A stretch of 64,000 bases of DNA from Paramoeba atlantica (taxonomy: Eukaryota > Protista > Discosea): positions 186,001 through 250,000 of the forward strand of contig CDRNVI010000059.1 in NCBI GenBank assembly GCA_977017575.1, read 5' to 3'. A program made the position numbers and the translations under genes. Shown in pieces: positions 2,134 through 64,000 of this stretch. Below the pieces are notes generated by a model. It worked only from the letters and a program-made list of their open reading frames with translations, was not told the origin of the DNA and did not search any database. Each line of letters starts with the position of its first letter. Position 1 is the stretch's first letter.

Positions 2134-3118
2134 GAGGGGTGACTCTGAGTGGGAGCACCTGGGAGCGCCTAAGATATCTTTCGTTAAAATTTTCTTCCTT
2201 AGCTTCTTAATATTTTTTGCTTCAATCGGAAGATATAGAAATCATGTTACTGGAATTGTTATTCTGTAGGACTTAAACGAGGGTTTCGGCATGTAATACA
2301 CGTTAACAATACATTGTGCTTAGAACGGTGACTCTGGGCGGGAGCGCCTAGGCTCCCGCCTAAATTTAGGAATTTTTCCAACTTTTTTTTCGTGAAAAAT
2401 GCGAACTTGGCGGACCCATCCTGCGGATAGCAGGGGGGGTCACCCCCACGTGGGGGTGGAAAATTTGTTCACTTTTTTTTAATATTCGAGGGTACAGCGG
2501 TAATTAAACAACCACTGCAATACACATAACGTTAAGACCGTCCAACCGGTGGGCTTTTCTTGGGCCACTGAGCGGAGCGTTGTAGTATCGGACTGCGTCA
2601 GCGACTCTGCTAATTCACGCGCTAAAACTCCACTACCCCAGATTGTTGGTCTGGGACGGTCCTGGCTCGAGGAACGAAGTTTTTTACGCCTCCACTCCTC
2701 CGGAGATGGGGTAGGATTCGACCAGAGCTTGCATGAGTGCAGTTCCACCTCCATCGAGGTTACAAGGTTGGCACGCGAGAAAAGGTGGTGCTAACAACGT
2801 ACTCCCGGCGATGGACTTGCCACGCCGTCTTACAACCCCGGAACGCGGCTAACGACTCCGCGAATAGGGGTTAAACAGGAAAAGGAATGGACAAATCCCT
2901 GCAACTAGCTGGAAGTCCTTACTTCGGAAAGCTGGGGTCGCCACGCCCCATCACCGACGACACCCCAACGCCGGTCTCCCTTTCTAACTCTTTGTCATGT
3001 TAGCCCAGCATGTTCCATCTAAGGGACATTGAGGATTCCGGACCTCTTTGAGAAAAAATCATTTTACCAAGTCGGATCTCCGTAGAAGTTTACTGGGAGC
3101 GCCTGGGAGTCACCCCTC
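2134..3118. mobile_element. PIF/Harbinger-like non-autonomous element
   Basis: Perfect 12-bp TIR GAGGGGTGACTC (2134-2145 / 3107-3118), TTA duplicated at 2131-2133 and 3119-3121, and subterminal gggagcgcc repeats. The empty site aacttagaagtcac is present in the copy at ~34950-34963 (minus strand). Confidence 0.75.
2500..2920 (-). pseudogene. possible decayed retroviral-type integrase (rve) core inside the PIF-like element
   Basis: Minus-strand fragments across stops and frameshifts: PYSR, KTAWQV, VPTL, LDGGG, PGPSQTN, ADAVRYYN...H. Their order resembles an rve core, but similarity is weak. Confidence 0.3.
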
Positions 3119-3380
3119 TTAGAAGTCACTCGTGCTGCGCGCTTCGTGTTGAAAACTACCTCCGCGTTTAACGAAGAGCATATAAAAGAAAAATTGGCGA
3201 GGGACGCTGAAGAAAACGGAAGGGTTTAAGTTTATGGACCCCCCAAGGGTCCGATTTTTTTTGAAAATTTTTGGACCACCGGAGCCCCTTTTATATATTT
3301 TTCTTCTATTATAAACCCCTCCGCATCAAAAGGGCACCCACCCTTATTTTTCGCATGACGGGGGCTAGGGTATGTTTTTT

Positions 3381-4101
3381 CATGCAGGGCGAGACCTGCA
3401 GAGATATTTAGGCCCAGCAGAGGTAGGCGCAATCAACGCTCCCTGCTGGTCCTTTTCGCCTTCCTCGGCGACACAGGGAAATGCGCGGGATATCTGCCCC
3501 GGGAAGGCGAAGAGAGACGGCCTCATCGGGATAAGATGTCCCAAGATGCTCAGTGAGCGCAATGCGCCAGGGAAGACATACGGATCTATAGGACGCGGAT
3601 GGTATTCCCATCGTACATGCTACAAATGACTTCCATGGTTCATGATACAACATGGTCAGGGCCATGGATGCATGCTGGCAAATGGAGTCATGGTTCATGA
3701 TGCATCATGGGCATCGGGGTCCCACAGAATCCGCCACGGCTGGTGAGCAAGAGAGGTGCATAGAGCATCCTCTAGAACACGCATGCAACGTGTTTGCTCG
3801 CCGTGTGGGAGACTTCCGGTATATGGAAGCCTCCTGCGCGCAGCAGTACCGGTGTCGCGCGATGGGGAAGACACGCCGCGTGGTCCCGTAGTTGGGTCCT
3901 GCAGCGCATGGGGACTCGGAACCATGTTCCGAGCGGGGTGGTGGGAGATGAAGGAAGGGAGGCGCACCCCTACTTTGCGACAAGAGGGACAGTTCCTCTC
4001 CTAGCGCCATCCGGAAACGGGCATTGACATAGTAAAAATATGCCCGTTTCCGGGAGAGAAAAGATGAGCTAGGAAAAAAAACAACAAGGTACAGAAACTG
4101 T
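3381..4101 (-). other. SL-headed inserted segment (putative retrocopy), no intact ORF
   Basis: The minus strand begins with the SL-like 20-mer, then a T9 run and a 14-bp hairpin, then GC-rich sequence. It abuts and truncates a Tc1 fragment at 4101. The left boundary is uncertain (T6 at 3375-3380). Confidence 0.45.
4082..4101 (-). other. spliced-leader 3' end relic ACAGTTTCTGTACCTTGTTG
   Basis: 17/19 identity to the conserved kinetoplastid SL end CAGTTTCTGTACTTTATTG. An identical 20-mer is at 61876-61895. Confidence 0.75.
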
Positions 4102-4495
4102 TATCGCACCACTTTATCGTGCAAAATTTTGAGATCTGTACGTTCCCGTTATCTTTAGCTCATTTCGAAAAATAAAAAAAAGTTGAATTTGTTTCTAATT
4201 TTTTTTCACTTTTCATGCCAAAAAATACGTATCGACTCCCCAGGGGTGGTCTTACAGAAAGTGGAAAAGTGTTATTACGCATGAGGCTTGGCCAAGGGGT
4301 TGCGATAAGGCAACTAGTCCGCGAGTTTAATGTCAATATGAAGCATATTCGAAAATATTTGAAAAAAAATCGCCGGAAAATATTTATTCTCTGAGCCCTG
4401 AAATAAAAAAAGAATCAAAAAACGGAGAAGCCTCGTTAAAGATACTATTGAACCTTTAGACCGAGCGGGGGTTCCCATAAATGGGTCTGCTCGCA
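4101..4495 (+). mobile_element. Tc1-like fragment (subterminal region plus N-terminal HTH), same family as 42747-44081
   Basis: caaaattttgagatctgtacgttccc is shared with ~43975-44000 (inverted). The translation PRGGLTESGKVLLRMRLGQGVAIRQLVREFNVNMKHIRKYL parallels ORF 43695-43904. Confidence 0.7.
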
Positions 4496-6130
4496 AGATT
4501 CAGTATACGAGAAGATGTGTCTTGCTGAAGTGCCGCAGTGTCACTCTCCCTATTCGGGGAAATTTGGTCGTATATGAGTTTGAGATCTCCTTCGCAATTG
4601 TTGCGTGCCATTGTTGTGATTCACAGAACTTCCGTCCGCGATCATGAATTTTAGCTTTAGAAGGCGCTATGCTCACCAAGATTCGCCCGAAGAGTACAAG
4701 TGAACACTTTTCGGATACTGTTTTTCGATCAAAAGAACGATGACTAGGAGGGTAAATTTGAGGTAAGACGTATTCTTCAGGGTCTACGTAAGACGGACAA
4801 CAAAATATGCTCAGACTTTGCTGAGTCGATTCCTGCATCAACGGCAATTCCACCATGTGTAAGTCAACGGCAGCGCAAAGCTTCTCCCGGACTTCGTGGG
4901 CTAAAATTTCAGTGTTGATGCCATCGCTTCAAATTGTTTTCGGAATAGTGTAGCATTTTTGATAACATTGGGTAGAAGGTCGAGGAGGAGATTCTCATAC
5001 TTGAACATGCTAAAAAAGTCGACCAAGTTGAAGAATCCTGGAAATGAGATTCTTTTCTGTCACATTGAAGAACGCGTGGGTCATTGCCTGTGTTTACAAA
5101 TACGCGACTTGTTCCTTGGTAAATGAATTGCAACATCGTAACACTTCCTGTTACGATGACAAAACATTGCAAGTGAATCCCTGTTTTTCTTTACGAACAG
5201 AGATTGTACGCGATTCTCCGCGATCAATGCGCTCCCATGTCCAAGTAGCGTTCGATCTGCCTAATCCCAAGCACACAAAACATTCGCCAGAATTGAATAC
5301 AAACTCTTTATCGCATGTACCTTTGAAGACCTCAAGTTGCGAGAAAAATTACTTAGATGATTCGATTGCTTCGCCTGGAGTCACGGTAGTGGAGTCACGG
5401 TCATAGCATGACGCACGCGTTATTTCTTTTCATCCAATCCTTTGCCCAAGAGGAAGAAAACTTTAGACAACCCCCATTAAAAGTCGTGGATCTAAGTGAA
5501 CAACGCTCTTTGATTCCTCGGGCGACGCTTGCTATAAGTCACTTATAGCATCACTTAAAGCGATGCGTAAATACATACCTTCCGCGTGTAAGTGTGTACG
5601 TACACGTGTAAGTTAGCCACTTACACACTTTTCTTGTAACACTGTTTTTGTTGATGGGAAAGCGATCTCGTGTAAACAGGCGCGGAAACACATAGACGAA
5701 TTCACAACAACAGTGCTGTGTTGCCGCCGTTCCTCGAGTGCCCGGAGCCACTTTCAGCTCGGTCCGGTGGTCATTTCAGCGTGGCAATACCTGGTGCCCA
5801 GAGATTCTTGTCACAGGGAAAATAAACCGAAACCCATCCCCCGTGAACGCGAAAAGTCTCGTCCTGCGCATATCTCTCATCGCCCTCGCGTTGTTCTTGC
5901 TGTGTTGCCGCCCTTCCTCGAGCGCCCGAAACCACTTTCAGCTCGGTCCGGTAGTAATTTCAGCGTGCGCAATACCTGGTGCCCAGAGATCTGTGGCGCA
6001 ACGCGGTTGTCTCCTGAACTCAGGAAGAAGGCTGTCGGAAGCTATGGTGTAGAAGAACGCCTCAAGAGGCGTGCAGTATACTGTAAAGTAATACTGAAAG
6101 TATACGAATAGCACTGCCCCCCGTACCCGG
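4496..6130 (-). pseudogene. decayed pogo-like (DDE_1) transposase
   Basis: Minus-strand fragments: TTGPS*KWFRALEE (Tc5-HTH-like), FVFNSGE...TW...RKEKQGFTCNV, LQFIYQGTS, ESHFQDSSTW. Many stops and frameshifts. Confidence 0.55.
5715..5990. repeat. ~90-bp direct repeat pair
   Basis: gctgtgttgccgcc...ctggtgcccagagat at 5715-5805 and 5899-5990. Confidence 0.85.
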
Positions 6131-6333
6131 TACCAACAAAACAAGGTACAAAACAACTAGGGTAACACTCTTTCCCGTGTCGGAGTAGTAGTATTAGAGG
6201 GCTGAAACCTGGAGGACCCTGTCACTTATCAGGTGGGATCGGTCGGGATCGACGCTTGAGTAGCTTCTTATGATACTGTGTTTTTACAACTTTTTTGGTG
6301 ACCCTTTTTTCTATCACTTTTTATTCTTTTTTG

Positions 6334-6428
6334 GGCTCTTCGTTAAACGTGGTGGTTGTTTCCAACTGAGATGACACCACTGCTGCGCGCTTCGCATTGG
6401 AAACTACCGCCGCGTTTAACGAAGAACC
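6334..6428. mobile_element. 95-bp hairpin mini-element (uninterrupted copy)
   Basis: Arms ggctcttcgttaaacgtggtggttgtttccaa and ttggaaactaccgccgcgtttaacgaagaacc, about 32-bp imperfect inverted repeat. Confidence 0.8.
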
Positions 6429-6650
6429 TAAAAAAAATGGAGAACGATACTAAACCGACAATTATCGTATCTACATTATTCGTTAAGTAGTAATTTACTT
6501 GTTAAACAGAACAGTACGGGCTTTTGGAAGGGGAAAATGGAGAAGAAAAACATGAAAACGTGCACTGAAAAAACACAGAAAATACAAAAAACACAGAAAA
6601 ATAGGGATACTTTGTTCACGTAATTGGTCGAATACTCGCAGGAGAAGAGA

Positions 6651-6944
6651 TCACTCCTGATCATTCACTATATTATGGCGATCACGTGAGACAATGTTGT
6701 TTAAATCTTTCATGCCTTTGTATAACCCTACGCACGATAGAGAAATGACGCGGCCAAAACGTTCTAAAAATCGCTCATGTACGAAAGCGTTTTTGCACTC
6801 GCCTCGCGTATTCTCGAAAAGCCACTCGCGCTCTTCACGGTTTAAGTTTTTCGCAGCCGACTGCATGTTTCTACCAAGTTCGATGGCATTGGCAGTGATG
6901 AAGCGATTTTGGATATCCATAACAGAGCGTTCAAATAATGACAA
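6651..6944 (-). CDS. 97-aa protein with CENP-B/Abp1-N-type HTH, inside a one-ended Tc1/pogo-like element
   Basis: LNREEREWLFENTRGECKNAFVHERFLERFGRVISLSCVG fits the LTxEQRxxL...FxxxFGxxISxSxVS pattern. A TIR-like end TA|CAGTGACGTTAAAAATGTCCCCACG lies at 7096-7122 on the minus strand. Confidence 0.45.
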   Translation of the reverse strand: MSLFERSVMDIQNRFITANAIELGRNMQSAAKNLNREEREWLFENTRGECKNAFVHERFLERFGRVISLSCVGLYKGMKDLNNIVSRDRHNIVNDQE

Positions 6945-7240
6945 AAAACATTTTACTCCGGAAAACCGAAATAATGCCCATTTTTAATTTTAGTAGAAAT
7001 TAATTTTCGTCCCACGAATAATAGCGACATTAAATTTTAGCTCCACTCTAATCGAAAGCGTGCAAACGTGATTCAATCCCACTCTTTTTTTGTAACGTGG
7101 GGACATTTTTAACGTCACTGTAGCAGGTGCCATTCCCCCTAATTCGGTCAGACTCATTATTCCTTGACCTACCTGTATGTTTATCATCATTTCGACTTTT
7201 CTTTCTGAGTAGATGTTTCGTACCGCCCAACCTTCGTGAG

Positions 7241-9769
7241 ATGAGCACCGCGCCGGTACGTCTTGCTTCTCTCACCACCATCCCCGAATTTCGCAAACTA
7301 TGCGGCCTTTCGGTTTACCAAATTCATCGTTACTTAGAAGCCTACAATGTTTTGCATATTCCAGAAGGGTCAGAAAAACCAAGTAAAGCTCAATTCGTCC
7401 CCTTTCGCGTCGCGCGAAACCTTCTACGAGAAATTTCTCCAGGATGTGTTGTGCAATACTACGAACGGGATCGATTTGTAAACCCAAAATTATTCCACGT
7501 GGGACCACAGCGTCCCCCCGTTGCATGTATTGCAGGCCATATCGCGCACGGCAAAACGACTCTACTCGACTCATTGCAGCGTTCTGCTCTTGCCAAATCC
7601 GAATCCGGCCGCATTACACAAACCATACGCGCATTCAATGTTCCTGTTCAACCATTTTCACCCAACCAAGAGCAAGCACCGCTTCTGGGAGCTCAAACAC
7701 CAGCGAACCGACGACTTGCCGGCTGGCTGCCGCCACACCTACAGTCAGTAACTCTCATCGACACGCCTGGTCATCGCGTTTTCTCCGAAATGCGACTCCA
7801 CGGACTTCAAATCGCTGACATCGTGCTTGTTCTCATCGCTCTCGATGAGGGCGTTCGCGGACAAACCACGGAAGTCATCCTTTCCTGCCTCGAGCTTCGC
7901 AAACCCATCGTTTTTGCTTTTAACAAAGCCGACCTTTTCCATGATCCCACCGCGCTCGCATCCCGGCTCAACACCATCGCCTCCGATTTACACCATCTTA
8001 AAATCGATCTCCATCCCATAACCTCATTGTCCTCTCTTTCCCAGTTCCTCAATAATTCTCACCCAACGGGTTCCAACCCCACAAGTTCTAGGAGTACCCA
8101 AATCCCTTCTTCCACCCACCGTTCTCCTGCACTCTGTATCTCCGCACTCCACGGCACCCACCTCCCTCTCCTCCTTCACCTCCTCTCTCATTACGCCTCC
8201 TCCTTCCTTACCCCCTCCTCTTCCTCCCATCCCCCTCCCCGGGGGTCCCTCCGCTATTCCCATCGTAGCTCCTCTACAACTACGAACCCTACGACGAGTA
8301 CGAATACTACAACTGATACTAACCCTACGACGAGTACGAACACTACTACTAACAGTACGACTAGTGCTATCCCTACGACTACTAACGCGACGACTACTAA
8401 CGCGACGACTACTAACGCGACGACTACTAACGCGACGACTACTAACGCGACGATTGCTAGCACTACGACTAGTAACCCTACGACTACTAAACCTACTACG
8501 AGTACTAACACTACAACTAGCACGACTAACACTCCTTCTACGACAAGTACTTGTAGTACGCCCTGTACTTCCAGCAGTAGTCCTACTCCCTGTACGACAA
8601 GTACTAGTCGTCGTACGCCTTATACTACGCGTAGTAGTAGCCATACTCCCTCCACTACCCGCCGCACGAACACGCCTTATACAAGTCGTACCACTCCTCG
8701 CAGTCGTACACCCTATACGACAAGGAGTCGTACGAGTGGTCGTGGGGGTTGTCGTGGTCGTCGTAGTCCTGGTCGTACGCCGTATACTACCAGTAGTAGT
8801 ACGAGTCGTCCTACGCGTACTGCAACGGCTACGACTACCCCTACGACCCAAGCGGTCATCCTCGAGAGCTTCCGCGACCCCGGGACCTCCTCGCTGGTCG
8901 CGAGCACGCTGGTGCGCTCCGGGACCCTTCGCCGCGGGATGTGGTTTCTCGCGGACCGCAACTACGGCCGGGTCGTGGGGCTCACGAACGCGTGGGGGGT
9001 GGGCGTCCCCGAGGGCAGGCCCGGGGTCCCGGTGAACGTGCACGGGCTGCAGCTCAACGGGTGCCCCGGGGTGGGGACCCACGTGCTGGTGGTGGGGACC
9101 CGGGAGGCGACCGCGGACGTGGCACGGTTCCGCGCGATGCTGCTGCTGTTCGTGGAGCGCCACCCCAGGGCGCTGGGGCTGCTGCGGCCGGAGGGGATGA
9201 ACACGGATTTCTTGCATTTGGGAAACTTCGGGCAGCTCGAGCGGGATAACTCGTTGGGGTTTCGGTTGACGCAAAGGGGGGTGGGGGAGCAAGCGGAGGG
9301 GATGGGGAAGGGGGGGGCGGAGGTGCCGTTGGAGGGGGGGGTGGAAGCGGCCCCGCCGGATCACACGGAGGCCCATAAGCATACGCCGCGGAAGCAGTTG
9401 CGGCTGTGCTTGCTCGTGGATACGTGGCACAGTGCGCGTATGATGATGCGGGAGCTTACGCGTCTGTCCTCGGAACACGTACAGGTGGCGTTGCTGACGC
9501 TCTCTGTGGGTCAGCTCACGGAGAGGCAAATCAAGGCCGCGTTGCTGGCGCAAGCGGATATGTTTCTCTGCTACCGTGCAGAGGTTGGGAATGCGAAGGC
9601 AGAGCGTCATGCAAAGGAGCGCAGTTTACCCATTCGTAAGTTTTCCGTGTTTATTGACGTTTTGGAGCTCGTCCGGGGTCTCATTGAGGAACGGGATAAG
9701 GAATGGAAGAGTGAACGTGAGGCGACACATCGCGATGCCTATGCTGCAGCGTTTATCCCCGCCCTGTGA
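7241..9769 (+). CDS. MTIF2: translation initiation factor IF-2, mitochondrial type, with large Thr/Ser-rich insertion
   Basis: G-motifs GHIAHGKTTLLDSL, DTPGH and NKAD, plus the domain II motif GTLRRG...GRV. The first in-frame ATG is 7241 (the ORF track starts at a GTG, 7127). Confidence 0.85.
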   Translation: MSTAPVRLASLTTIPEFRKLCGLSVYQIHRYLEAYNVLHIPEGSEKPSKAQFVPFRVARNLLREISPGCVVQYYERDRFVNPKLFHVGPQRPPVACIAGHIAHGKTTLLDSLQRSALAKSESGRITQTIRAFNVPVQPFSPNQEQAPLLGAQTPANRRLAGWLPPHLQSVTLIDTPGHRVFSEMRLHGLQIADIVLVLIALDEGVRGQTTEVILSCLELRKPIVFAFNKADLFHDPTALASRLNTIASDLHHLKIDLHPITSLSSLSQFLNNSHPTGSNPTSSRSTQIPSSTHRSPALCISALHGTHLPLLLHLLSHYASSFLTPSSSSHPPPRGSLRYSHRSSSTTTNPTTSTNTTTDTNPTTSTNTTTNSTTSAIPTTTNATTTNATTTNATTTNATTTNATIASTTTSNPTTTKPTTSTNTTTSTTNTPSTTSTCSTPCTSSSSPTPCTTSTSRRTPYTTRSSSHTPSTTRRTNTPYTSRTTPRSRTPYTTRSRTSGRGGCRGRRSPGRTPYTTSSSTSRPTRTATATTTPTTQAVILESFRDPGTSSLVASTLVRSGTLRRGMWFLADRNYGRVVGLTNAWGVGVPEGRPGVPVNVHGLQLNGCPGVGTHVLVVGTREATADVARFRAMLLLFVERHPRALGLLRPEGMNTDFLHLGNFGQLERDNSLGFRLTQRGVGEQAEGMGKGGAEVPLEGGVEAAPPDHTEAHKHTPRKQLRLCLLVDTWHSARMMMRELTRLSSEHVQVALLTLSVGQLTERQIKAALLAQADMFLCYRAEVGNAKAERHAKERSLPIRKFSVFIDVLELVRGLIEERDKEWKSEREATHRDAYAAAFIPAL
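8375..8449 (+). repeat. 5 x 15-bp perfect tandem repeat ACGACTACTAACGCG (TTTNA) within IF2
   Basis: Five exact copies counted, embedded in a larger act/acg/agt/cgt low-complexity tract (~8270-8850). Confidence 0.95.
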
Positions 9770-22093: not shown

Positions 22094-23727
22094 CAGTCCA
22101 GGTATTGGTTTCCCCCCCAGGCTCCTGAGCACACCGTAAGAGCTTTTAACCTAATTCCTTCGGCATTCAACGGATCTCGAAAAAGTAGAGCGTTTCCCGC
22201 CGTTTGTTTGCCCATCACCCCCCCTGGGTTCTGGGTGGGTGTGATCAAAGATGGCAAATTTCAAAAGTAAAAATATTTTTGAAGGGGAGTAAAAAATGAC
22301 AAAAAAGGTGTATGAATTCCTATATTAATACCCACAATGGTCTCCTTGAACGCTCTGCACTATTCGCAAGCGTTTAGGTACTGAATTTATGCAATTTAAG
22401 ACTTGGCGTCGATAAGGATGACGCTTAAGCATCATGAAGGCTTTCTTTATTGCCTTCCGGAGCTGTGTTCCAGTCTCTGGCTTCAGAATTTCTTTCACAA
22501 TTCGGTCCATTATTGACCAAACATTCTCGATCGGATTGAGGTCAGGAGAGAGTGCTGGCCACTCCAATCGAGTAATTCCTTTTTCGAAAAGGACACGCTT
22601 CGTTTTGTTATGCGTGGCCGCATTGTCCATTTGCACAATCGCTTGTTCTCTATTTTCAACTAAATATTCAAGAATACCCCCCCTTTTTGAAAAACACTCA
22701 ACGAGAATCGTTTCACCCTTCACGGAACTTGCATCCCTAATTTTTTTACCTTGCGATTGGGATGAAAACAAATGCAAAAAAGGGCCGTGTTTCACACTCA
22801 TTCCCATCCATACCATGACAACTTTACCACCAAACCATCGGTTGTTTCTCCTCATTTTAATTTTGGTACATCCTTTCTTTCCGATAAAAAAGCGAGAGTA
22901 AGTCTTTGAACCACATGTAAATTTTTTTTCGTCCGTCCAAATTATAGAATCTAATTTTTCTTTGGGAAAGGACAATAAAGACTCTGCTAGACCTAAGCGG
23001 GCCTCTTTGTGATGTTGCTTTAACTCGCAGCTAGGTGCTTTTGCTTGTAGTAGGTAATTTAATGAACGTAGAGTTTACTTTATTGTGCTTAGAGAGCAAT
23101 GAAACCCCTTTTTAATCATTTCGTTATGTACTCAAGGAAAGGATGGGCAGCCATCGATTGTTTTGTTAGCATCGTCAACAACTTTGACGATTGGGGCCCT
23201 GAATGGCTTCGTAGACACAGAGAAACCAGGGCCTGGGTGGGGTTTGGGTTCTAGTGGACTTTTAGACTTCCACGTAGACAGAATTTCGCGGACAGTCTTT
23301 CTGTCCCTGCCAAAATTTTTAGCTAAAGTATAAATCGAATTTCCTTTTCTATATTGGCGGACAATTTCAAGGCGCTCTGGGAGTGCACATCGCGAAGTTT
23401 TATGGGTAATAGGGGGTCTCTTGTTTTTCGGCGAGTTGGAGTACTGACCTTTAGTAGATTTAACGGGGGTATCCCTCAAATTCATAGAATAAGAAACCAT
23501 ATTTAATAAAAAAATCCTAATTTTTTGAAATATTGGATTTTTTTGTTAAAATTACTCTATTTTTTCGTGTGTTTTCAAAATATTTTTGACCCAGGGGGGG
23601 GTGATGGGCAAAAAAACGACGGGAAACGCTCTACTTTTTCGAGATCTGTTGAATGCCGAAGGAATTAGGTCAAAAGCTCTTACGGTGTGCTCAGGAGCCT
23701 GGGGGGGGGAAACCAGTACCTGGACTG
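22094..23727 (-). mobile_element. Tc1/IS630-like DNA transposon, full length (1634 bp), disrupted transposase
   Basis: TA|CAGTCCAGGT ends with TA at 22092-93 and 23728-29, TIRs of ~140 bp. HTH ORF 23132-23500 and DDE ORF 22325-22975 (WTDEKKF, MDNAATH, SPDLNPIEN). Confidence 0.95.
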
Positions 23728-29736: not shown

Positions 29737-29903
29737 AACAGGAATACAACTGCATATTTTAGCTCTATGAAACAAAAAAAATTAGCTTGAATTTGGTGAT
29801 GGTGGCCTATTATATTTAACGACCTACATAAATGGGTAAATCACTAGTAATAATTATGCGTCCTTTAAAAAAATCAACGTTCATTATTTACGTTAATATC
29901 GCA

Positions 29904-30578
29904 ATGATTTCACCTTGCATACATTTCAGTGTTGTTCGAACTGCCGACTCGTCATATCGACCGAGCAAAGTTCATGGCGCCGTTTTGCCCCAAGAATATA
30001 CTTTATTACAATTCTTGGGCAAAATTGATTTGAGTGAAGCATCTTGGAGCACTCAGACCCCAGCATGTGAATGGAAATACGTCATATGCAATGAAGAATT
30101 GGAGGTAACTCATATACATTGGGATTACCTCCCTACCAACTTGTGTTTTTCCAAAGTGTGTCTTACGAATGTTCTTCAAGGCGAGCTTCTCTGGCAGTAC
30201 TTACCCCACACTTTGATACATTTTTCAGCTCAATGTCACGGTATCACTGGACCAATAGATTTTTCTGTGTTACCTTCAAAGCTAGTAAATTTTTATATCG
30301 GCTCTAACAAGTGTGATGGGTCGCTAGATCTTTCTCACTTGCCATCTAGTCTTAACGTATTATTTCTAAGTCATAACAAATTTACTGGTGAGATCGATCT
30401 GACGTGTCTACCTGGGTCGATTTCTGAGGTACACGTGAGAGACAATAGGCTATACGGGGCGTTAAATTTCAGCAAACTTCCAAGGAGCCTACGGGGACTG
30501 GACCTTTCAAATAATTGTTTTGTAGTACCTGAGCATGTGCCAGATGTCGTTATTATTGGACTGCAGAACACATTGTGA
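29904..30578 (+). CDS. LRR family protein
   Basis: TADSSYRPSKVHGAVLPQEY leader, CEWKYVICN cap, LFLSHNKFTGEIDLTCLPGS repeats. Alternative start 29832. Confidence 0.85.
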   Translation: MISPCIHFSVVRTADSSYRPSKVHGAVLPQEYTLLQFLGKIDLSEASWSTQTPACEWKYVICNEELEVTHIHWDYLPTNLCFSKVCLTNVLQGELLWQYLPHTLIHFSAQCHGITGPIDFSVLPSKLVNFYIGSNKCDGSLDLSHLPSSLNVLFLSHNKFTGEIDLTCLPGSISEVHVRDNRLYGALNFSKLPRSLRGLDLSNNCFVVPEHVPDVVIIGLQNTL

Positions 30579-34589: not shown

Positions 34590-34993
34590 AGAAAAAAATA
34601 TAAAATGGGGCTCCGGTGGTCCAAAATTGAAAAAAAAAATCAAAAAAATGGGGGGTCCATGGGGGGGGGATACGTCGCGAAATTTTTTTCGAATTTTTTG
34701 CTTTTCAAAATCGAGCGCAGGGAAGTGGTAGAGTAGGCTGCGGCGATAATTTTCCACCCCCCCCCTGGGGGTACCCCCCCTGGTACGCGCAGGAGGGGTC
34801 CGATAAGACCAAAATTTCTGAAATTTTTAGGATGACCAAAAACATTTTTTTTTTGACCCAAAAAAAAGTAAAAATATTATTTTTCCAAAATCAACTCCTA
34901 AAACGCATTTTAGGAGTTTGGGACCGGGAACGCGAAGCGCGCAGCATGAGTGACTTCTAAGTTGAAAACAACCACCGCGTTTAACGAAGAGCC
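34590..34993. mobile_element. composite MITE-like repeat related to 2098-3300
   Basis: 34929-34993 is the inverted left two-thirds of the hairpin mini-element. 34745-34810 matches 2400-2470 and 34600-34630 matches ~3270-3300 (both inverted). Confidence 0.65.
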
Positions 34994-35155
34994 TAAAAAA
35001 ATTAATAATCGCTAATAATGATTTAATGCTTAGGTAGCAATAAGTAAGAATTATTATTAAAGACTGAAATTATTAATAATATATATAGCCCTACCCCATA
35101 AATTTAATTTGCACAAACTAATACTAACCTTCCTTTCTTCCTTCCTCCCTCTTTT

Positions 35156-39356: not shown

Positions 39357-40993
39357 CAGTCCAGTACACAATGTTTGCTCTCTCAGACCACAGAGTACAC
39401 CGTAAGAGCTTTTGGCCTCATTCCTTAGATACACCCCTGGGCAACTTCATTTACCCCCCCCCTACAGGTCTTGTATTTTGTTCGATTTCGGAAATATTTG
39501 GTATGGGACTGTTTTTCGCTCCGATCGTCTCGAATCCGCGGTCGTTTTCACTCGAGCGACCTTGATTTGCTCCGAGACCTTAAAAAGTTTGTCCAAAAAG
39601 TCAATTTTTCTTTGCCCACCCTAGAAAAATCTACTTTTTTTCTGTTTTTTCCTCAATGGTCAAACGATATCGGGCTTCTTCCCTCCCGAATCAGCGTATT
39701 TCACCAGAAAGGCGAACTCTCATCATAGCACGCTACAAGGAACTAGAATCCCTACGTGCTGTAGCTAATGAGCTCAAAATCTCCAGGAATGGAGTAAGAT
39801 ATTGGGTGCGGCACTTTGAAAAGCTCCAATACGTTTCCACCCCACCTCGCCAAAAACGGCGTACGGTAGTTACCAATCGCTACCGTCGTGCGTGTGTCAA
39901 GGTTTGCCGCAAATTAAAAAAGCAAAACCCCGAAGGAACATCTATTAGCCACGTTGCACGCGTGGTTACAGGTTCCCACGGGGGTTCAAGCAGAAGCGTT
40001 ACCCGAGCTTTGGATTTACAAGGCTACGGGAAAATTCGCAAGGAGCGTGATGTAGGGCTTACACCAGCACACGCGAAGAAGCGGCTTATCTTTGCGCGCA
40101 AACTTCTTAAATGGAGTGATGCGAAGTTAAGGCGTATCGTCTTTTTATTATGCTTTTTAATTGTTCCCTCGGTTCCCGTCAAAACTATTATGTTGATAAG
40201 AAGGGGAAGAAAAAATTAAGGCAGTCCCCCAGACAGAAGAAGTTTTTTGGGGGGAAAGGTATCATGGTATGGATGTGTTACGGCCCTAATCATGACCTTC
40301 TGCACCACATTTTTAGTTGAGAACGGGGCGCTAAAATCGATTCTGCAGATGCGTGGAAAGCCTTGGTGGAAAGCGGTTTCATTGCTTCTTTACGAAGGAA
40401 CCGCAGGGCAATTCCTCAGTTGGATAATGCCCCCACTCATTCTCTTGCATTTAAAAAGCTGAAAAAGAGAGCATTAGATTGCCCCCCCCTATCCCCTGAT
40501 TTAAATCCTGTAGAAAACATGTGGTCTTGGATGGAGTACCACATCAAAACAGTAATAAAACCTAACAATAGACACGAATTACAAGGCGCTATCATCAAAA
40601 CATTCGATGTTTTATCAGGAGTACATGTCGATAAATTAAGAAATCCATTTAAAGACTTCCACAAACGACTTAAATTGGTGGTAGAAAAGAAAGGTTATCA
40701 CATTGGTTATTGAATACGTATTCAGCGTCTTTTTTGCGTTCTCTAAGCATGATTTACATTTTTAAAAACATAAAAAATATTTAAAAGCAAGAAAAGAATT
40801 CAAAAAAAAAGTGTACACCCTCAAAAATTGTCTAGTCATTTTAGTAAAAAAAAATATTATTCCAATCATGAAAAGGACCGCGAATTCGAGACGATCGGAG
40901 CGAAAAACAGTCCCATACCAAATATTTCCGAAATCGAACAAAATGCAAGACCTGTAGGGGGGGGAGGGGGTAAATGAAGCTACCCAGGGGTGT
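39357..40993 (+). mobile_element. Tc1-like transposon, frameshifted, right TIR truncated
   Basis: TA|CAGTCCAG left end; >120-bp inverted match between ~39425-39545 and ~40870-40993. ORF pieces 39656-40713 carry LDNAPTH and SPDLNPVEN. TIR segment caccgtaagagctttt is shared with 22094-23727. Confidence 0.9.
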
Positions 40994-42180: not shown

Positions 42181-44176
42181 AACCAGGGGTGCGGATAAAT
42201 ATTTAAATTCCGATTTAAATATTAACCCGCAATTTAAATATTAACGTGTAAGAGAAAACGATTTAAATATTAATGTGCAAGCAGGTTAATATTTAAATTC
42301 CAGAATGTTTTTCAAGGTATGATCTTTTTTTACGAATGAGGGGATGCGAGCATGATCTCGCGTGATCTCACATGATCTCTAGTGATATCGTTTTGGGCCT
42401 CACCCGCAGACGCTCGAGTGTAGAAATATAAACAGGGGGGCGGATTATTATTACAGTGTAAAGGCTAAAAGGGTTAAGATAGTTCAGCGGACAAGTTGGA
42501 TGAAAATCCACCTTTGAGTGATAGCCTCCCCAAAAGCTACCTCAGTTTACTACGAGGAGGCAACACCCCCATTGGGATAGAAAGCCTTACAACTTTCAAC
42601 TTTCCCTGGTGACGTCCAAGGATGACCGTTCAGTTGAATGCCTCTTAACACTTTCATGAAACTGATCTGCGAAAAAGGCTTCCATAGGAAAAAAAGCGAT
42701 TTAAATATTAATCTGCATCAAAATATTATGTGCAAACAGGTTAATAAACCCCTGGCCAAAATAAGGCACCCCCCTCTAAAAATTCGATGCTTTGTTTGTT
42801 TCAGCTAATTTCAATGGCATTTTGCAGATCTCAGTTCGGGATTTATGTCCTCCCACACTTGGTCACTAGTCCTATAGCTATTTATAAAGTGGAAACTATT
42901 TACCACTTTTTTACCTTTTCGCCACCTAGTTCGACGCAGGCCTTCAGTCTACGATCGAAACTTAAGATGGTGTCACTTATCATCTCAGTCGGTAAAGAAC
43001 TCCATGTGTTTAGAATACACCTTTGCAGTTCGGAAACTGTAGATGGTAGCTTTTCATTTACGTCTTGTTGTACCATTGACCATATGTTTTCAATGGGAGA
43101 AAGATCGGGAGAATTTGGCGGCCAATTTTTTAGTAGATTAATTTTTCGTTTGTTCAGGTAATTTATGGTGGCCTTGGCCGTATGAGCGGTGGCACCATCT
43201 TGTTGAAATATTCTTTTGCGGGGGAAATAAACATGTTTTAGTGTGTCTATGCATGTTTCGTGGGTAATAGAGGTCCTGCTGGATAAAAATTTTAAGCATC
43301 CCCAGTTAATTCCTATAGCACCCCACACCTGACACTTAGGCGCCCAGCGCACCTTTAGTCTCTTTGCAGGGGTCTCTCCTTTTTTTACCCACATTTTCAT
43401 TCGATTATCGTTTGTATCACCTTCTCATCTGAGAATATAAATTTCGATGTGTCCTCTTTGTAATTTAAAGAAAACTGTACGCGTTTTTCTTTTTGTACAG
43501 CGGTGAGCCCTTGTGAAATTGGGCGTGGCCTATATTGATGCCCTGCTTGCCTCAAATCTCGACGAACAGTTCGAGGGCTTGCAGTAACACCCTTTCTGCA
43601 CAAAACAACAGAAATACGCTTTGAACTGTTGTACTTTGGCACCCCTGCCGCATCTTTCTTAGAAATAATGGTTTCAATCCTTTTTTACGAGACCTTATTT
43701 TTTTTTCTGTGGGGATTTCTTTAGGCTTTTTTCCGTCTCAATTTTGGGGTGATCACGGAGGTATTTTCGAATGTATTTCACGCTTACATTCAATTCACGT
43801 GCTATTCGTTTCTTTGGGATGCCATCTTGAAACCTTAAAAGCATGACTTCCTTCCCCGGGGGGCTGAGGCCACCTTTCGGAGGCCTGCGGAATGATTTTT
43901 TCATAAATCGACCCTAATGTTAAAGTGGTAAAATATTTTTTTATTTTTTTTGTTTTTCATGAGCTAAAAACAGCGGGAACGTACAGATCTCAAAATTTTG
44001 AACGAAAACATGGTATGATAACCCTACCATACCCCCTCATGCAAAAAATAAGGGGGGGTGCCTTATTGGTGGCCAGGGGTTTATTTAAATAAAATTTAAA
44101 TATTAACTTGCAATTTAAATATTAAGGCGAATTTAAATATTAATCCGCATTTAAATATTATTCCGCACCCCGGGTT
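42181..44176. mobile_element. foldback-like MITE with ATTTAAATATTAA subterminal arrays, hosting a nested Tc1
   Basis: Terminal inverted aacc(a/c)ggggtgcgga; multiple atttaaatatta(a/t) copies at 42200-42300, ~42700 and 44093-44160. Confidence 0.75.
42747..44081 (-). mobile_element. Tc1-like transposon (DD35E), 1335 bp, disrupted
   Basis: TIR aacccctggcc...ataaggcaccccc with TA at 42745-46 and 44082-83. Motifs FSDEK, QQDGATAH, NSPDLSPIEN (35 residues between D and E). Confidence 0.92.
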
Positions 44177-49603: not shown

Positions 49604-50172
49604 TTAATTTTCGGACAGCTCCCATCCATCCGCGGTCGCATCTTCAAGCTGCACATCGTTTATCAAATTGATTGTATACTCACAATCGGAATCTGAGTCA
49701 CGGAGCGCTCCGACGGTTTCTTCGTCAGTACTTTGTTTTTCAGGAAGTGATGGAATTCCTGGTCCGCACGGCCACCATGACTTAGAAAGATTCTTTCGGG
49801 TCAAAACATTATTCACCCTACTGAATGTGGCAGGATAGAACAGGAATGAACATAAATTGTTCACTACATGTATTCCACATTCATTTAGCGTAGGCTCCTG
49901 CTGCATGACTGGAGCATGTCGAAGACGAACATCCTCTATTGAGTGACCAAGAAGAGGACAGAATAATTTTAGAAAGCACTGAAGAAAATCTTGACGAGCA
50001 ATCGGAGAATAACCCTCGTAACTATCAAATATTGTCAACAGATGCTTTCGGAGTTCCACGAAAAAAAAATGGTTGTTAAAAAAGAGCACCGCAATAATTC
50101 GTGAGTCGGGGAAAATATGACTGAACATTTTGCGCTGAAAACCTAAAAGTAATCGAGTCTTTCCTGTGTTCA
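49604..50172 (-). CDS. Ulp1/SENP-like cysteine protease domain (peptidase C48), -1 frame continuation of the transposase
   Basis: FFNNHFFFV (His), IFDS (Asp), QQEPTLNECG (Gln, Cys) in clan CE order. One extra T in the T5 run at 50172-76 gives RICFLNT in frame. Confidence 0.8.
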
Positions 50173-51789
50173 AAAACAAATTCTTTTGTCTGCGGAAGGG
50201 GCTAGGCGGTATGCCTGCAATACATTTTCGCATAATGTATCAACAGCATGCGTCGTAAGAAATCGCTTTCGACCGCGGAATCGTTTCCACTCTTTGTCAT
50301 AGTGGGACGTGTTGCCCGCACTATCTTCTACCACAATGGATTCTTGTGTGGGTTTTTCTCCTTTTGAAATTGAGGAGGGTGAGACGGCATGTTCAGGACA
50401 TATTCCAAGAGTAGTTTTTGAGCCAACTGTAACGCTTGACTCAATCCAAGGGTATTCAGTCGCAGGTCGCAAAATGTAAGTTTGTGCAACTTTTAATAAA
50501 GTGCTCTGGTTTTTTGCCCATACATGTGCATGTGCATCCTTAATCCATTGCAAAACAAGCGCACGAGTAACCTTCTGGAAGCTATTTCGAAGTCGCCACG
50601 CGCTAAGAAGCTCATTATATTGACGCTTGAATAAGCGATTAAAAACGCGATCATGGAATTGTATGGCTTTCGTACACCCTCCGGGTATCGTCTGTGGATC
50701 ACAATTCGTTGGTACATTATTCGTTCTATGAGCGGTATAATCGTCCGTGATAATAACCGTCGAGGGGTTGTCAAGAGTATAGTGTAAATATTTCTTTAAC
50801 ATTCGCTCATAGACATCGTCAGTAACCCACCCAGAACGACTTACATCGATGTAAATCCCGCTCAGAGAATAAGCTAGACGTGTCATTTCAGTGTAAATGG
50901 TAGAGCTTTCTCGATTCTTTGCATTGTGCTCAAAGATCACCGTTGGGTAAAGTGGAAATACCTTATCCAAAGCAAAATCATACACACCTGCAAGAAAAGC
51001 TGTAACTGTTTCTTTCGGATTGGTATCCACGACTTTTGGCTGTGGGCAACCAATCGGAGCAAGAGTGTATCCTTGAACTTCTCCATTGACAAACATCGCA
51101 GTTTCGTCACCGAAGAAAGCGAAGCGATACTTACGCACAGTGTTTTGAGTATAAAATTTCTCTGCCCACTGAGAGATTCGAAATTCTACGTCACTGGGCG
51201 CCAGGCACTGCGTTCGACCCCATCTCCGCCACACCCATCCATAGTGCTTTTTGAAACGCTGATAAGTGTCTTCTAAAGCTGTTATAGAAGTTAATCTCGT
51301 TTTCTGTCGGATCAAATCGATCACCATCGACTTGGTCAGTGGGCACCACAATGCGGAGGCCTGCTCACAAGCACGATGAACAGACAGCATTGCCTCAGCC
51401 TTATCATAGACTTCGGCATTCGCATCACTATAATCCCCCCCTCTTTCATTGAATCCCCGGTTCCGGTGTTGGTTTCCCATGTTGCGGTTAATTAACTTTT
51501 GGTAGTGGTCAATCCCCGTTTTACGAATTTCATAAACCGCTCTCCGTGATATACCATACTTTTGTTCGATTTGCTTTACAGAACTTTGAGATCTACAAAT
51601 TTCTCGTTTCTCGAATATAGTAAGTTCAGTACGCTGCCGTTTTTCCTGAACTGTTACCGTCGGGGTGTTGTTAATAATAAGGGATGTGCGCTCCCCTACT
51701 TGCGGTTGGGGAGGGAGCTTCCGAAGCCAAGTGGTCAGAGGTCCACGCACAGAGTGAACTGTGGTCGGAACTCCGTCAGTATCTGACAT
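50170..51789 (-). CDS. pogo-like transposase (CENP-B-N/psq HTH, Tc5 HTH, DDE_1; DD30D)
   Basis: RTELTIFEKREIC...KYGISRRAVYEI; FFGDETAM; IITDDYTAH; IPGGCTKAIQFHD. 539 aa from MSDTDG (ATG 51789). Confidence 0.9.
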   Translation of the reverse strand: MSDTDGVPTTVHSVRGPLTTWLRKLPPQPQVGERTSLIINNTPTVTVQEKRQRTELTIFEKREICRSQSSVKQIEQKYGISRRAVYEIRKTGIDHYQKLINRNMGNQHRNRGFNERGGDYSDANAEVYDKAEAMLSVHRACEQASALWCPLTKSMVIDLIRQKTRLTSITALEDTYQRFKKHYGWVWRRWGRTQCLAPSDVEFRISQWAEKFYTQNTVRKYRFAFFGDETAMFVNGEVQGYTLAPIGCPQPKVVDTNPKETVTAFLAGVYDFALDKVFPLYPTVIFEHNAKNRESSTIYTEMTRLAYSLSGIYIDVSRSGWVTDDVYERMLKKYLHYTLDNPSTVIITDDYTAHRTNNVPTNCDPQTIPGGCTKAIQFHDRVFNRLFKRQYNELLSAWRLRNSFQKVTRALVLQWIKDAHAHVWAKNQSTLLKVAQTYILRPATEYPWIESSVTVGSKTTLGICPEHAVSPSSISKGEKPTQESIVVEDSAGNTSHYDKEWKRFRGRKRFLTTHAVDTLCENVLQAYRLAPSADKRICF

Positions 51790-52330
51790 AAGGGTGAAAA
51801 GTACGAGAGAAAGAGAGGAACAAGTATACAAATATATATTATCTCCACATACATAGATGCACATCAGAGGCTTAAAAGCACAAAGCCCTTTGAAGAAATT
51901 GGGTAAAAATAGGCAAAACATCTGCTTTTAAAAAAACGCTCCGAAAATTCAACATGGAATTTGTGCATATTAAGGGGGGGGAGGGAAGGGGGTGCATATT
52001 AAAGGGGGGGTCACAGTATGTTGTTGTATGTATTAGCAACAGAACACGATTCTTTTTCAAAATCTGCCATACAGCAATTGTCCATTTTTCGGACGATCAT
52101 TTTACCTAAATAAAACATAGACTATTTAGAACATTATATGCGTGCATATGACATTAGAAGACGTGCATTTGCGTCACTGCATCTCGATCAAGTTATTTTG
52201 GCAGTTCGCTTTCTTTTGGTAAGCGAAATTGGTAACCTATTGGATATTGTAGTAGAAGTATTAACATCTAGGCAAAATTAAGATTCGTACTGATATTTTG
52301 AGGGTTTTCTTAAAGGGATAAAAACACGTT

Positions 52331-61513: not shown

Positions 61514-61875
61514 ATGTGTTGCATTTTCTTCAATACAGCTGACTCATCAGTTCGATCAGGAAAAGTGCGAAGAGCTCTTTTACCTCAGGAGTTCACTCTC
61601 GCGCAGCTCGTACAGGATATCACCACCTCCGAAGCGTCCTGGACTACTTCCGCTCCTGCATGTGAATGGTCGTACGTGAAGTGTAATGCTGAAAAGGAAG
61701 TAACTAGTTTGCCATGGTGCTTCAGTTTGTTTGCATCAGATTGTCCCACACTACAAGGAAAACTATCTTGGAAATACTTACCACGTACTTTGTTGTTTCT
61801 TGATGCTTCTTCGCAGTCTTTGAGAGGGCCCGTGGATCTTTCTGTTCTACCTCCGGAACTACAAGATTTCCAGAT
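61514..61875 (+). pseudogene. LRR family gene truncated by SL-headed insertion
   Basis: TADSSVRSGKVRRALLPQEF, CEWSYVKCN cap, first LRR ...LSVLPPELQDFQIQ. Family homology stops where the SL 20-mer starts. Confidence 0.85.
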
Positions 61876-61895
61876 ACAGTTTCTGTACCTTGTTG
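61876..61895 (+). other. spliced-leader 3' end relic ACAGTTTCTGTACCTTGTTG
   Basis: Identical to 4082-4101 (minus strand), followed by a second accttgttg and a pyrimidine tract. Confidence 0.8.
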
Positions 61896-61934
61896 ACCTT
61901 GTTGTCTCTTTTTTTCCCTACCCTTTACAACGAC

Positions 61935-64000
61935 ATGTTTTGCTTACTACTAGGGAAGGGCACACACCAGGCGTCGCAGGACTCTCCTAAGAGACCACGC
62001 GACGTGTCTAACCAAAACAAAAACCTGTCCCTGAAAGGCACTCCCACAGACAGGGTTGCAAAACCTGCTACCCGAACCGTCCAGGCTCTCATATCCCAAA
62101 AGAGCAATGAGTCCCTTACCAGCGACACAGGAGAAGCACCCCCAGCTCCATGCAAACATCCTTGTAAGGACAAAAGCACCTGCGGACACCCCTGTTGCAA
62201 GCGGGGTGTAACGCGGCCACATATCCTGGTCACTCCTCACACAAACGAACTTCCCCCTCACCCCGTCCCCCCCACCACACAACAAACGGTTCCGGAATGC
62301 AAACACCGCTGCAAGGACAAAGCTCACTGTGAACACCCATGCTGCAAACGACACCTGGTACGCGTAGCAAAACCGGATACGTACAACAATAAGAGAAGTG
62401 ACGCACCGGTGGATGCAAGAGAAGACGTGAAGGTGATCACGGCTGTGAGTGTAATGCCGGTACAACGTAGCACACCCTGTAAGCATGTCTGTAAAAACAA
62501 ACAGACCTGCGGGCACCCATGTTGCAAACGTAATCTTACACCAACAACATACGAACTCACGAGCACTACGGCGAGCGGTCAAGAATCCGGGCCCAAAGAA
62601 GCTCCAAGTACGCGACAAAGGGACGAAACGTCACCGCCATGCACGCGTGACCGCGTAACACAGGATGTGAAAGTACCGAAATCAAGCAACCTACTTGGCA
62701 TGGCAGCGCGAGCTGCAACACGATATCTGTTTTCAAGCCGCACTCAACCGTACGCTAACGGCACTCCCTCAACCCCGGCGGTAACCGTACGACCTCACAG
62801 CAGCACCGGACAGGATCGCTTGTCGTACACAATAGCACCCTGTCCAAAAGACGAACACGATTTACATGTACCCCCACCCAAGGAGGTTATTCCCCATCAA
62901 AAATCACCCACTGTTACCGTCGGTCGTGCCGTCGCATCAACTGCCTGCTCGCTTGCCAAATTCCTACTTTTCAACGGCGTTCCATGTCAAACTCCGGACT
63001 CCCAAAGCCTCCCCAAACCTAAATCTCAAACACAACTTCAGGTCCACGCCTTAACTAGCGTATGCAAGCATATCTGCAAGAGTAAAGATCAATGTAAGCA
63101 CGTGTGCTGCAAGCAAGGCCTAGGCCCCGCCTCCGAACAAGCAGACCGTGTCGAGCCCTGTAAGCATAAATGTAAGAACAAAGCAGGGTGCGGCCATCCT
63201 TGCTGCAAACGCACTGGCACACCGTTGACTTCGCTTGACACACCGATAAGCAAACTGGATGGGCAGGATACTCTACCCACCGGCCCATGTACCCTTCCCA
63301 AGAATCTCGTCACACCGTCCCTAAACGCAACCACTACGACAGCTGACCGTGCCGTTGCCAGGGAACCAACCATCCCGACTCCCAAAAACAAGGCACCGGA
63401 AAGTATCATTCTCTTGGTCTCATCTTCCCCAGCACACCAACACAGTCCGCGGAATGAGAATGGCGATGACGAAGTCCCATCCTGGGTTTTCCAACAAGCG
63501 CACAGCGTAGGGCGAATACAAAGCCCGCCGCTTGAACAAGGAAGCCTCTTACCCCCATCACAACTGGACACCCATTTACATTCGGACGAATCCGAGGGTC
63601 CCCAGATTCCCATACAAACTCCCGACAGCCCGTCACAGTATCTCCCGCCGCCCCAGGACCTCACGCATCCCGTAACCCATAACCGACACAAGCAACGTTT
63701 CCACTTTATCCAGTCCCGGTCAAAACCTGTCAAACTCCGCCTCGTCAACGACAACACATGGAGATATTTCCCGGATGTGCATGCAGCATGCGTAAGCCAA
63801 CTTGTGCGTAGTCGTATCCCTTCCCCCCAGGGGGCTGAAGCCGCCCTGTCCAAAGCGCTCAATGGGAAAAGTGCAGCACACGACATCGTCGTAGAAACGT
63901 GTACCGTAGACGAACTTATGGAAAAGAGAGCGTGTGACTTTTTAGAAGTTAGTAGAGTAGACTCAACAAGTCACATTTCTCGCCACGCGAACTGGGTATC
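61935..64000 (+). CDS. large ORF (at least 688 codons, runs off the window) with five CxHxCKxKxxCxHxCCK zinc-finger motifs
   Basis: Translated codon by codon from ATG 61935 with no stop to 64000, hence missing from the ORF track. Motifs start at 62151, 62298, 62478, 63063 and 63159. Confidence 0.85.
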   Translation, partial: MFCLLLGKGTHQASQDSPKRPRDVSNQNKNLSLKGTPTDRVAKPATRTVQALISQKSNESLTSDTGEAPPAPCKHPCKDKSTCGHPCCKRGVTRPHILVTPHTNELPPHPVPPTTQQTVPECKHRCKDKAHCEHPCCKRHLVRVAKPDTYNNKRSDAPVDAREDVKVITAVSVMPVQRSTPCKHVCKNKQTCGHPCCKRNLTPTTYELTSTTASGQESGPKEAPSTRQRDETSPPCTRDRVTQDVKVPKSSNLLGMAARAATRYLFSSRTQPYANGTPSTPAVTVRPHSSTGQDRLSYTIAPCPKDEHDLHVPPPKEVIPHQKSPTVTVGRAVASTACSLAKFLLFNGVPCQTPDSQSLPKPKSQTQLQVHALTSVCKHICKSKDQCKHVCCKQGLGPASEQADRVEPCKHKCKNKAGCGHPCCKRTGTPLTSLDTPISKLDGQDTLPTGPCTLPKNLVTPSLNATTTTADRAVAREPTIPTPKNKAPESIILLVSSSPAHQHSPRNENGDDEVPSWVFQQAHSVGRIQSPPLEQGSLLPPSQLDTHLHSDESEGPQIPIQTPDSPSQYLPPPQDLTHPVTHNRHKQRFHFIQSRSKPVKLRLVNDNTWRYFPDVHAACVSQLVRSRIPSPQGAEAALSKALNGKSAAHDIVVETCTVDELMEKRACDFLEVSRVDSTSHISRHANWV

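Follow-up and report, generated by a model that had tools for sequence, protein, structure and literature searches.

A retrotransposon headed by spliced-leader sequence, probably copied from its own trans-spliced RNA, interrupts a leucine-rich repeat gene

At position 61876 of the window (the whole 64,000-nucleotide (nt) stretch of contig CDRNVI010000059.1 that was analysed), a leucine-rich repeat (LRR) gene gives way to an insert whose first bases correspond to the 3' end of a spliced leader (SL). Judged from its sequence, the insert is the 5' end of a young copy of an R2/CRE-like non-long terminal repeat (non-LTR) retrotransposon, a long interspersed element (LINE). A second head of the same kind, at position 4101, belongs to a partner that resembles a short interspersed element (SINE). 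The explanation that we favor, at a probability of roughly three in four, is that LINE and SINE-like copies arise by reverse transcription of their own trans-spliced mRNA, with the leader being copied into DNA.

The 20-mer ACAGTTTCTGTACCTTGTTG is located at 61876–61895 on the forward strand and its reverse complement at 4082–4101, in agreement with the first-pass annotation of the window, and 100 shuffles of the window gave no match to it with up to three mismatches permitted. As also described there, ACCTTGTTG recurs just after the head at 61896–61904, and a stretch rich in pyrimidines then leads to an ATG at 61935, 40 nt past the head. The LRR frame starting at 61514 matches a paralog at 29832–30578 with 50% identity in a BLASTP alignment that ends in ...LPPELQDFQI and ...LPSKLVNFYI, respectively. 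While the first-pass annotation was right to place an interruption here, it ended the LRR homology at 61875; the alignment extends through codon 121 (ATA, 61874–61876), where the paralog also has isoleucine, and the first A of the 20-mer is therefore shared. Since the paralog is 248 codons in length and continues for 127 codons beyond the break, the LRR gene must have been interrupted at this point. The sequence AGATA is common to the LRR codons and the leader, which leaves 61877–61895 as the unambiguous head. DNA sequencing runs contain 0.86–0.92 of the words sampled from the site, the features of which are as follows.

61514–61876, + strand: target LRR gene, shortened after codon 121 (BLASTP against the paralog at 29832–30578).
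61872–61876, + strand: AGATA, the 5-nt LRR/leader microhomology at the 5' junction (blastn matches of 24–25 nt run from 61872 to heads in contigs L003, L005, L006, L008, and L009).
61877–61895, + strand: unambiguous SL-derived head, covering the final 19 nt of the leader exon (no difference from the 3' end of the exon in the SL RNA gene of contig L013).
61896–61904, + strand: copy-specific tandem repetition of the 9 nt with which the head ends (within one LINE family, not in L003 or L002, and 7 nt in L001).
61905–61934, + strand: pyrimidine-rich 5' untranslated region (UTR) of the LINE (kept in the L001, L002, and L003 copies).
61935–64000, + strand: N-terminal part of the LINE polyprotein, an open reading frame (ORF) of 688 codons that is open to the window end (five CKHxCKxKxxCxHPCCKR motifs; the last 21 residues continue into the reverse transcriptase (RT) protein P0032).

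The 688-amino acid (aa) sequence of this ORF had no clear hit in Pfam or Atlas, only weak leads to NF-X1-like zinc fingers. An exhaustive protein search identified near-identical copies (97%, 97%, and 92%) on three further contigs of one public assembly, the identity to protein P0001 being 97%, as well as distant relatives of the last 110 residues, two of which bear an RVT_1 domain. On contig L003, the same ORF is followed by the 885-aa P0032 and then by a gene matching zf-RVT. Since the last 21 residues of the window ORF are residues 2–22 of P0032, the window frame runs in frame into the RT. RVT_1 was detected in P0032, P0005, P0035, and P0036. The closest solved structures for P0032 are R2 proteins (~1e-26, compared to 1e-18 for L1 ORF2p), and the nearest named matches of a word-limited protein search were R2-annotated arthropod proteins. 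A spider protein with an R2 (R2DM) annotation can be aligned to the C-terminal ORF at CxxC..H..C, RH(D/N), LRPD, (E/D)-x-T-x-P, and RK..KY, a layout that, as far as motifs can tell, is that of a CCHC finger and a PD-(D/E)xK-type restriction-like endonuclease (RLE). No sequence match to this ORF was found among solved structures, including a solved RLE, and no part of the LINE matched Exo_endo_phos, the domain of the apurinic/apyrimidinic endonuclease (APE). By its RT, its RLE motifs, and the absence of an APE, the LINE is classed as an RLE-type (R2-superfamily) non-LTR retrotransposon. At least three families of such LINEs carry heads, and their proteins are 46–49% identical. Their 3' ends consist of a short A/T-rich tail after a conserved ..CAGGT....CCCTGYATRA, with no long poly(A).

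The identity of the leader comes from a scan of metagenome contigs with the 19-mer, which gave one telling match, on L013; the matches on L010, L011, L012, and L014 were due to chance or uninformative. On L013, AACTTTAACG stands before the 28-nt form of the head, and after it come GTATGAGAAGC, a stem-loop rich in GC, and a run of T. The 28-nt consensus of the heads is nt 11–38 of the exon of this SL RNA gene; the exon is 38 nt long and starts with AACTTTAACG, and the intron begins with GTATGAG. The ends of L013 (1–1785) overlap, which fits one unit of a tandem repeat of ~1.78 kb, and the contig also holds a 5S rRNA gene (98 bits) on the strand opposite to the SL RNA gene. Linkage of SL RNA and 5S genes is noted for bodonids in a passage of PMC7859406 that cites Santana et al. 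2001. By this comparison, the heads match nt 11–38 of the SL exon of a genuine kinetoplastid SL RNA gene, seen on an environmental contig, as the first-pass annotation had supposed for the 20-mer in reading it as a spliced-leader 3' end.

A scan for the leader 3' end elsewhere, as the first-pass annotation had proposed, was made in 191 kb comprising the window and nine contigs of one public assembly (L001–L009) that were retrieved with proteins of the window LINE family and three related ones. It identified 16 leader-like heads, ten before LINE ORFs and six before the SINE-like element. All 16 stop at one base (..CCTTGTTG, ..TTGTTG), and a family-specific UTR comes next. The maximum, 28 nt (ATAAAGATACAGTTTCTGTACCTTGTTG), is reached by seven, whose flanks are unrelated; the other nine measure 27, 26, 26, 24 (the 61876 copy), 20 (site 4101), 18, 17, 13, and 10 nt. 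The lengths form a truncation series. Over the retained length, 13 of the 16 heads have no mismatch to the consensus and the rest have one or two. Since invariant heads are found on far-diverged elements, repeated acquisition from one conserved external source is indicated rather than inheritance within each family.

All 16 copies lie outside SL RNA genes, and exon nt 1–10 stand ahead of none. An SL RNA gene, discounted for 61876 in the first-pass annotation for want of a GT donor, is likewise rejected at 61876 and 4101: neither head has a GT directly after it, the element UTR follows, and exon nt 1–10 are missing. Among the findings named there as contrary to its reading, two were not made, in that no head is followed by an SL intron of the L013 type and none is the terminus of a DNA transposon. 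Rfam identified no family in the window, the SINE copies, or the heads, and a literature search for a 16-mer, a 13-mer, and related strings returned nothing relevant.

The head at 4101 belongs to an insert that can be delimited from filled and empty sites.

3371–4101, - strand: SINE-like non-coding element of ~730 nt, with its head at 4082–4101 and its end at ..GCCCTGCATGAAAAAACATA (filled vs. empty site; DNA contigs skip 3371–4099; 3' end in common with the LINE).
4011–4053, - strand: 14-bp hairpin, 48 nt into the SINE-like element and kept in other copies (sequence comparison of copies).
4102–4181, - strand: upstream flank of the insert, a dispersed host repeat ending in ..GGTGCGATAA (repeat comparison).
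43941–44095, + strand: uninterrupted, empty-site paralog of the dispersed host repeat (repeat comparison).

Contigs of the DNA runs join 3370 straight to 4100, and the depth of the SINE-like insert is ~10–30x that of single-copy sequence. LINE and SINE-like copies have in common the 3' end given above with its short A/T tail, and their 5' UTRs are related, so that the shorter element looks like a dependent SINE of the LINE on the strength of these shared ends. A homology search with its 101-aa ORF was empty and the element was treated as non-coding. Derivation of the SINE from the SL RNA intron was rejected, as the L013 intron (GTATGAGAAGCTTCG..) is unlike the sequence that follows the SINE heads.

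The insert lies in a repeat-rich region, beside which an ORF of 250 aa with no Pfam match is found (929–1681, + strand). A repeat of ~70 nt is present in both orientations at 3118–3187, 6366–6435, and 34931–35000, and also at 2094–2135 and 6330–6371. Its depth in the DNA contigs is ~400–600x single-copy, and it probably represents a highly abundant element resembling a miniature inverted-repeat transposable element.

A pattern that fits trans-splicing is seen in the SINE copies, which have two forms. Four copies read head, GTACATTTTCCCTAG, and CTCATCC, and two read head and (C/T)TCATCC. The 15 nt absent from the short form end in a pyrimidine tract and AG, as does a 3' splice acceptor; thus, the short form is the expected product of trans-splicing at that point. 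A related LINE copy on L007 (3940–3980) is head-less; the flank, which is unique, closes with ..CTTTTTTTAG, and homology to the headed copies sets in 5 nt later. This flank is suggestive of a genomic trans-splice acceptor, seen in a single, degenerate copy.

Since the heads stop at the exact exon end in all families, form a truncation series, and are invariant, reverse transcription of trans-spliced RNA is the best explanation that we can infer from the DNA copies. The template would be the LINE's own trans-spliced mRNA, and its reverse transcription would write the SL into DNA. The copy at 61876 would have kept 19–24 of at most 28 leader bases, with the 5' junction formed on the AGATA microhomology between leader and LRR codons. 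At site 4101, the same process would have acted on the SINE-like partner, which shares the 5' leader region and the 3' end of the LINE. A daughter copy made in this way would have swapped its upstream acceptor for the leader, and new RNA would come from head-less masters or from copies that lie behind a usable AG.

Several points weigh against this explanation. No element transcript was seen, and the one RNA run placed no reads on 2300–8200; the identification of the SL comes from an environmental contig, L013, that could not be tied to the window organism. No head holds SL nt 1–10, which is not what full-length copying of an SL-capped mRNA predicts. Trans-splicing also does not account for the partial tandem repeats at the leader/UTR border.

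The upper limit of 28 nt has a counterpart in known elements. CZAR and SLACS split the 39-nt SL exon between nt 11 and 12 (PMC5814959) and, counted from the exon 3' end, the limit of the heads is that same point. For kinetoplastid RLE elements this coincidence may not be chance. A broader proposal, which we regard as tentative and more probably wrong than right, is that a guild of CRE/R2-like LINEs and a SINE in a free-living kinetoplastid would replicate via SL-capped RNA, that the DNA copy of the leader would always stop at exon nt 11 as the element machinery recognizes the leader (trimming or blocking there, or using it as a homology arm), and that the SL-gene-specific CRE elements of trypanosomatids would descend from SL-capped ancestors.

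The tandem repeats at the leader/UTR border may be due to template jumping, in which the element RNA would be leaderless and an R2-like RT would jump, at the RNA 5' end, to the 3' end of a free SL exon, an intermediate of splicing, or to some other RNA with an SL, and copy it. End-to-end template jumping is established for the R2 RT. Partial copies of the last 7–10 leader bases are repeated in three copies from two families: 9 nt in the window and 7 nt in L001, with none in L003 or L002 of the same family, and 10 nt in L004, with none in its relative on L008. Each duplicate stops exactly at the exon end and no AG is found ahead of any. The first-pass annotation had suggested that the 9-mer may record two rounds, a reading that its absence or shortening in sister copies and the missing AG do not support. 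On L006 (3860–3946), a full head is immediately preceded by at least six tandem (T/C)ATAAAGAT units, which repeat the first 8–9 nt of the 28-nt form and look like RT stuttering at the template end. Jumping of the RT between templates is a candidate cause for the leader stutters by analogy with R2. As a replacement for reverse transcription of trans-spliced RNA it is nevertheless unlikely, since it requires the element RNA to have a fixed 5' end at one base in every copy, which trans-splicing at an AG supplies anyway, and the segment that distinguishes the two SINE forms has a pyrimidine tract and AG at its end. Template jumping may account for the duplications without replacing the favored model.

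Slightly less likely again is co-transcription, by which master copies would adjoin the exon of an SL RNA gene on its 3' side and use the promoter of that gene, the head then being read-through. The elements are of the RLE type like CRE, SLACS, and CZAR, which inhabit SL RNA genes (PMC12278014, PMC5814959), and the 28-nt limit is the CZAR/SLACS insertion point. Against this, all 16 copies lie outside SL genes and lack exon nt 1–10 ahead of them, and at least three families would each need an insertion exactly at the exon/intron border. The two SINE forms would also be left unexplained.

An SL relic ahead of an intact ORF could have been a retrocopy of an ordinary host mRNA of the dinoflagellate type, and the first-pass annotation had proposed the reverse transcription and integration of mature mRNA as a route for the birth of genes and transposable elements. 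The first part of that proposal survives in that the leader entered with a reverse-transcribed element. A retrogene is very improbable since sister copies have RT and RLE domains in continuation of the ORF, and the element is present in multiple copies with 92–97% identity at unrelated loci. The insert is accordingly the 5' part of a retrotransposon and not a recycled host mRNA, and a route for gene birth is not supported, as the 61876 ORF runs into an RT and the head at 4101 belongs to the non-coding SINE-like partner. A Tc1-like transposon terminus, for which the TA-CAGT at 61874 resembles Tc1 ends (TA|CAGT...), and a chance match can be dismissed: the start of the head varies among copies, the 730-nt element has no inverted copy at its far end, the elements encode an RT, and no shuffle gave a match.

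The target sites recur to some extent. A full LINE of the window family on L003 (9433 to ~15008) and the SINE-like insert at 4101 occupy the same base of two copies of the one dispersed repeat. A SINE on L003 is at the same LRR codon position as the 61876 insert (..CTAAAGAT|), with a microhomology of 7–8 nt and the LRR frame resuming just after the SINE 3' end, so that two inserts share an LRR codon position. On L001, the window LINE family interrupts another LRR gene two codons earlier than at 61876; compared to an intact paralog of 96% identity on the same contig, this insert comes with 36 nt of filler sequence taken from the flank upstream. The other copies are in unrelated flanks. Since filled and empty sites differ by 0–2 nt, there is no real target-site duplication. 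The first-pass annotation had looked to downstream poly(A) and target-site duplications as marks of such insertions, and neither a long poly(A) nor a clear duplication is found in the copies described here.

The elements may be compared with several known systems. With the CRE clade (CRE1/2, SLACS, and CZAR), they have in common a kinetoplastid host, a single long ORF, zinc-finger-like motifs, an RT, an RLE, and a tie to the spliced leader (PMC5814959, PMC12278014), in addition to the 28-nt limit discussed above. In contrast to that clade, the copies described here occupy sites other than SL RNA genes, among them LRR genes and a dispersed repeat, bear the 3' part of the leader at their own 5' end, and have neither a long poly(A) nor a clear target-site duplication. 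R2 provides the closest solved RT relatives, alignable RLE motifs, near-blunt insertions, and 5' junctions with stutters and duplications. R2 is freed from a 28S co-transcript by a ribozyme, whereas here the 5' end is the spliced leader, and the Cys motifs at the N-terminus differ in type. In dinoflagellates, SL-relic retrogenes also carry a DNA-encoded SL remnant at the 5' end that marks passage via a trans-spliced RNA (PMC6050394, PMC12014239); those are host genes in which the relics stack as the leader supplies an AG acceptor, while here the carriers are retrotransposons and a SINE, and the short duplications have no AG ahead. L1Tc/ingi elements with Pr77 show another way in which LINEs of kinetoplastids cope without gene-specific promoters (PMC1874656, PMC8190864). 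Their internal promoter yields unspliced transcripts and their endonuclease is an APE, in contrast to the elements here, which appear to depend on trans-splicing.

Kinetoplastid genes are without promoters of their own, and retrotransposons therefore need some route to a capped, translatable RNA. Two routes are known, an internal promoter (Pr77 in L1Tc/ingi) and residence in SL RNA genes (SLACS, CZAR, and CRE). The copies described here point to a third, a reliance on trans-splicing by which the leader would be written into each new DNA copy. Leader heads would then be a natural tag of recent retrotransposition in such genomes, and the shared 28-nt boundary would connect them, in a way that can be tested, to the emergence of the SL-gene-specific CRE clade. 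The insertions show that LRR surface-protein genes are repeatedly disrupted. Leader-headed copies would explain the dispersed partial SL sequences met in assemblies. In the assembly of Papus ankaliazontas, ~80 contigs have a partial SL and one has a full gene, for which no interpretation is given (PMC7859406); by analogy, these may be the same phenomenon. Papers on Bodo saltans and on the mobilomes of trypanosomatids list CRE-clade elements and do not mention leader-headed copies, and no description of leader-headed LINEs in kinetoplastids was found in the literature searched, the coverage of which was incomplete.

The window holds other mobile and repetitive sequences. Two elements of ~1.5 kb, at 22112–23707 and 39455–40964, have inverted repeats of 96–120 nt that are 94–97% complementary, and the second contains an ORF (39656–40219) with Tc3-type helix-turn-helix matches. 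Both are Tc1/mariner-like DNA transposons and fall outside of the four transposable element clades reported for trypanosomatids. An ORF of 583 aa on the reverse strand (50170–51921) has a DDE_1 (pogo-type) transposase domain. A run of repeat units of 12–18 nt is present at 8280–8555, within an eIF5B-like GTPase gene (7127–9769).
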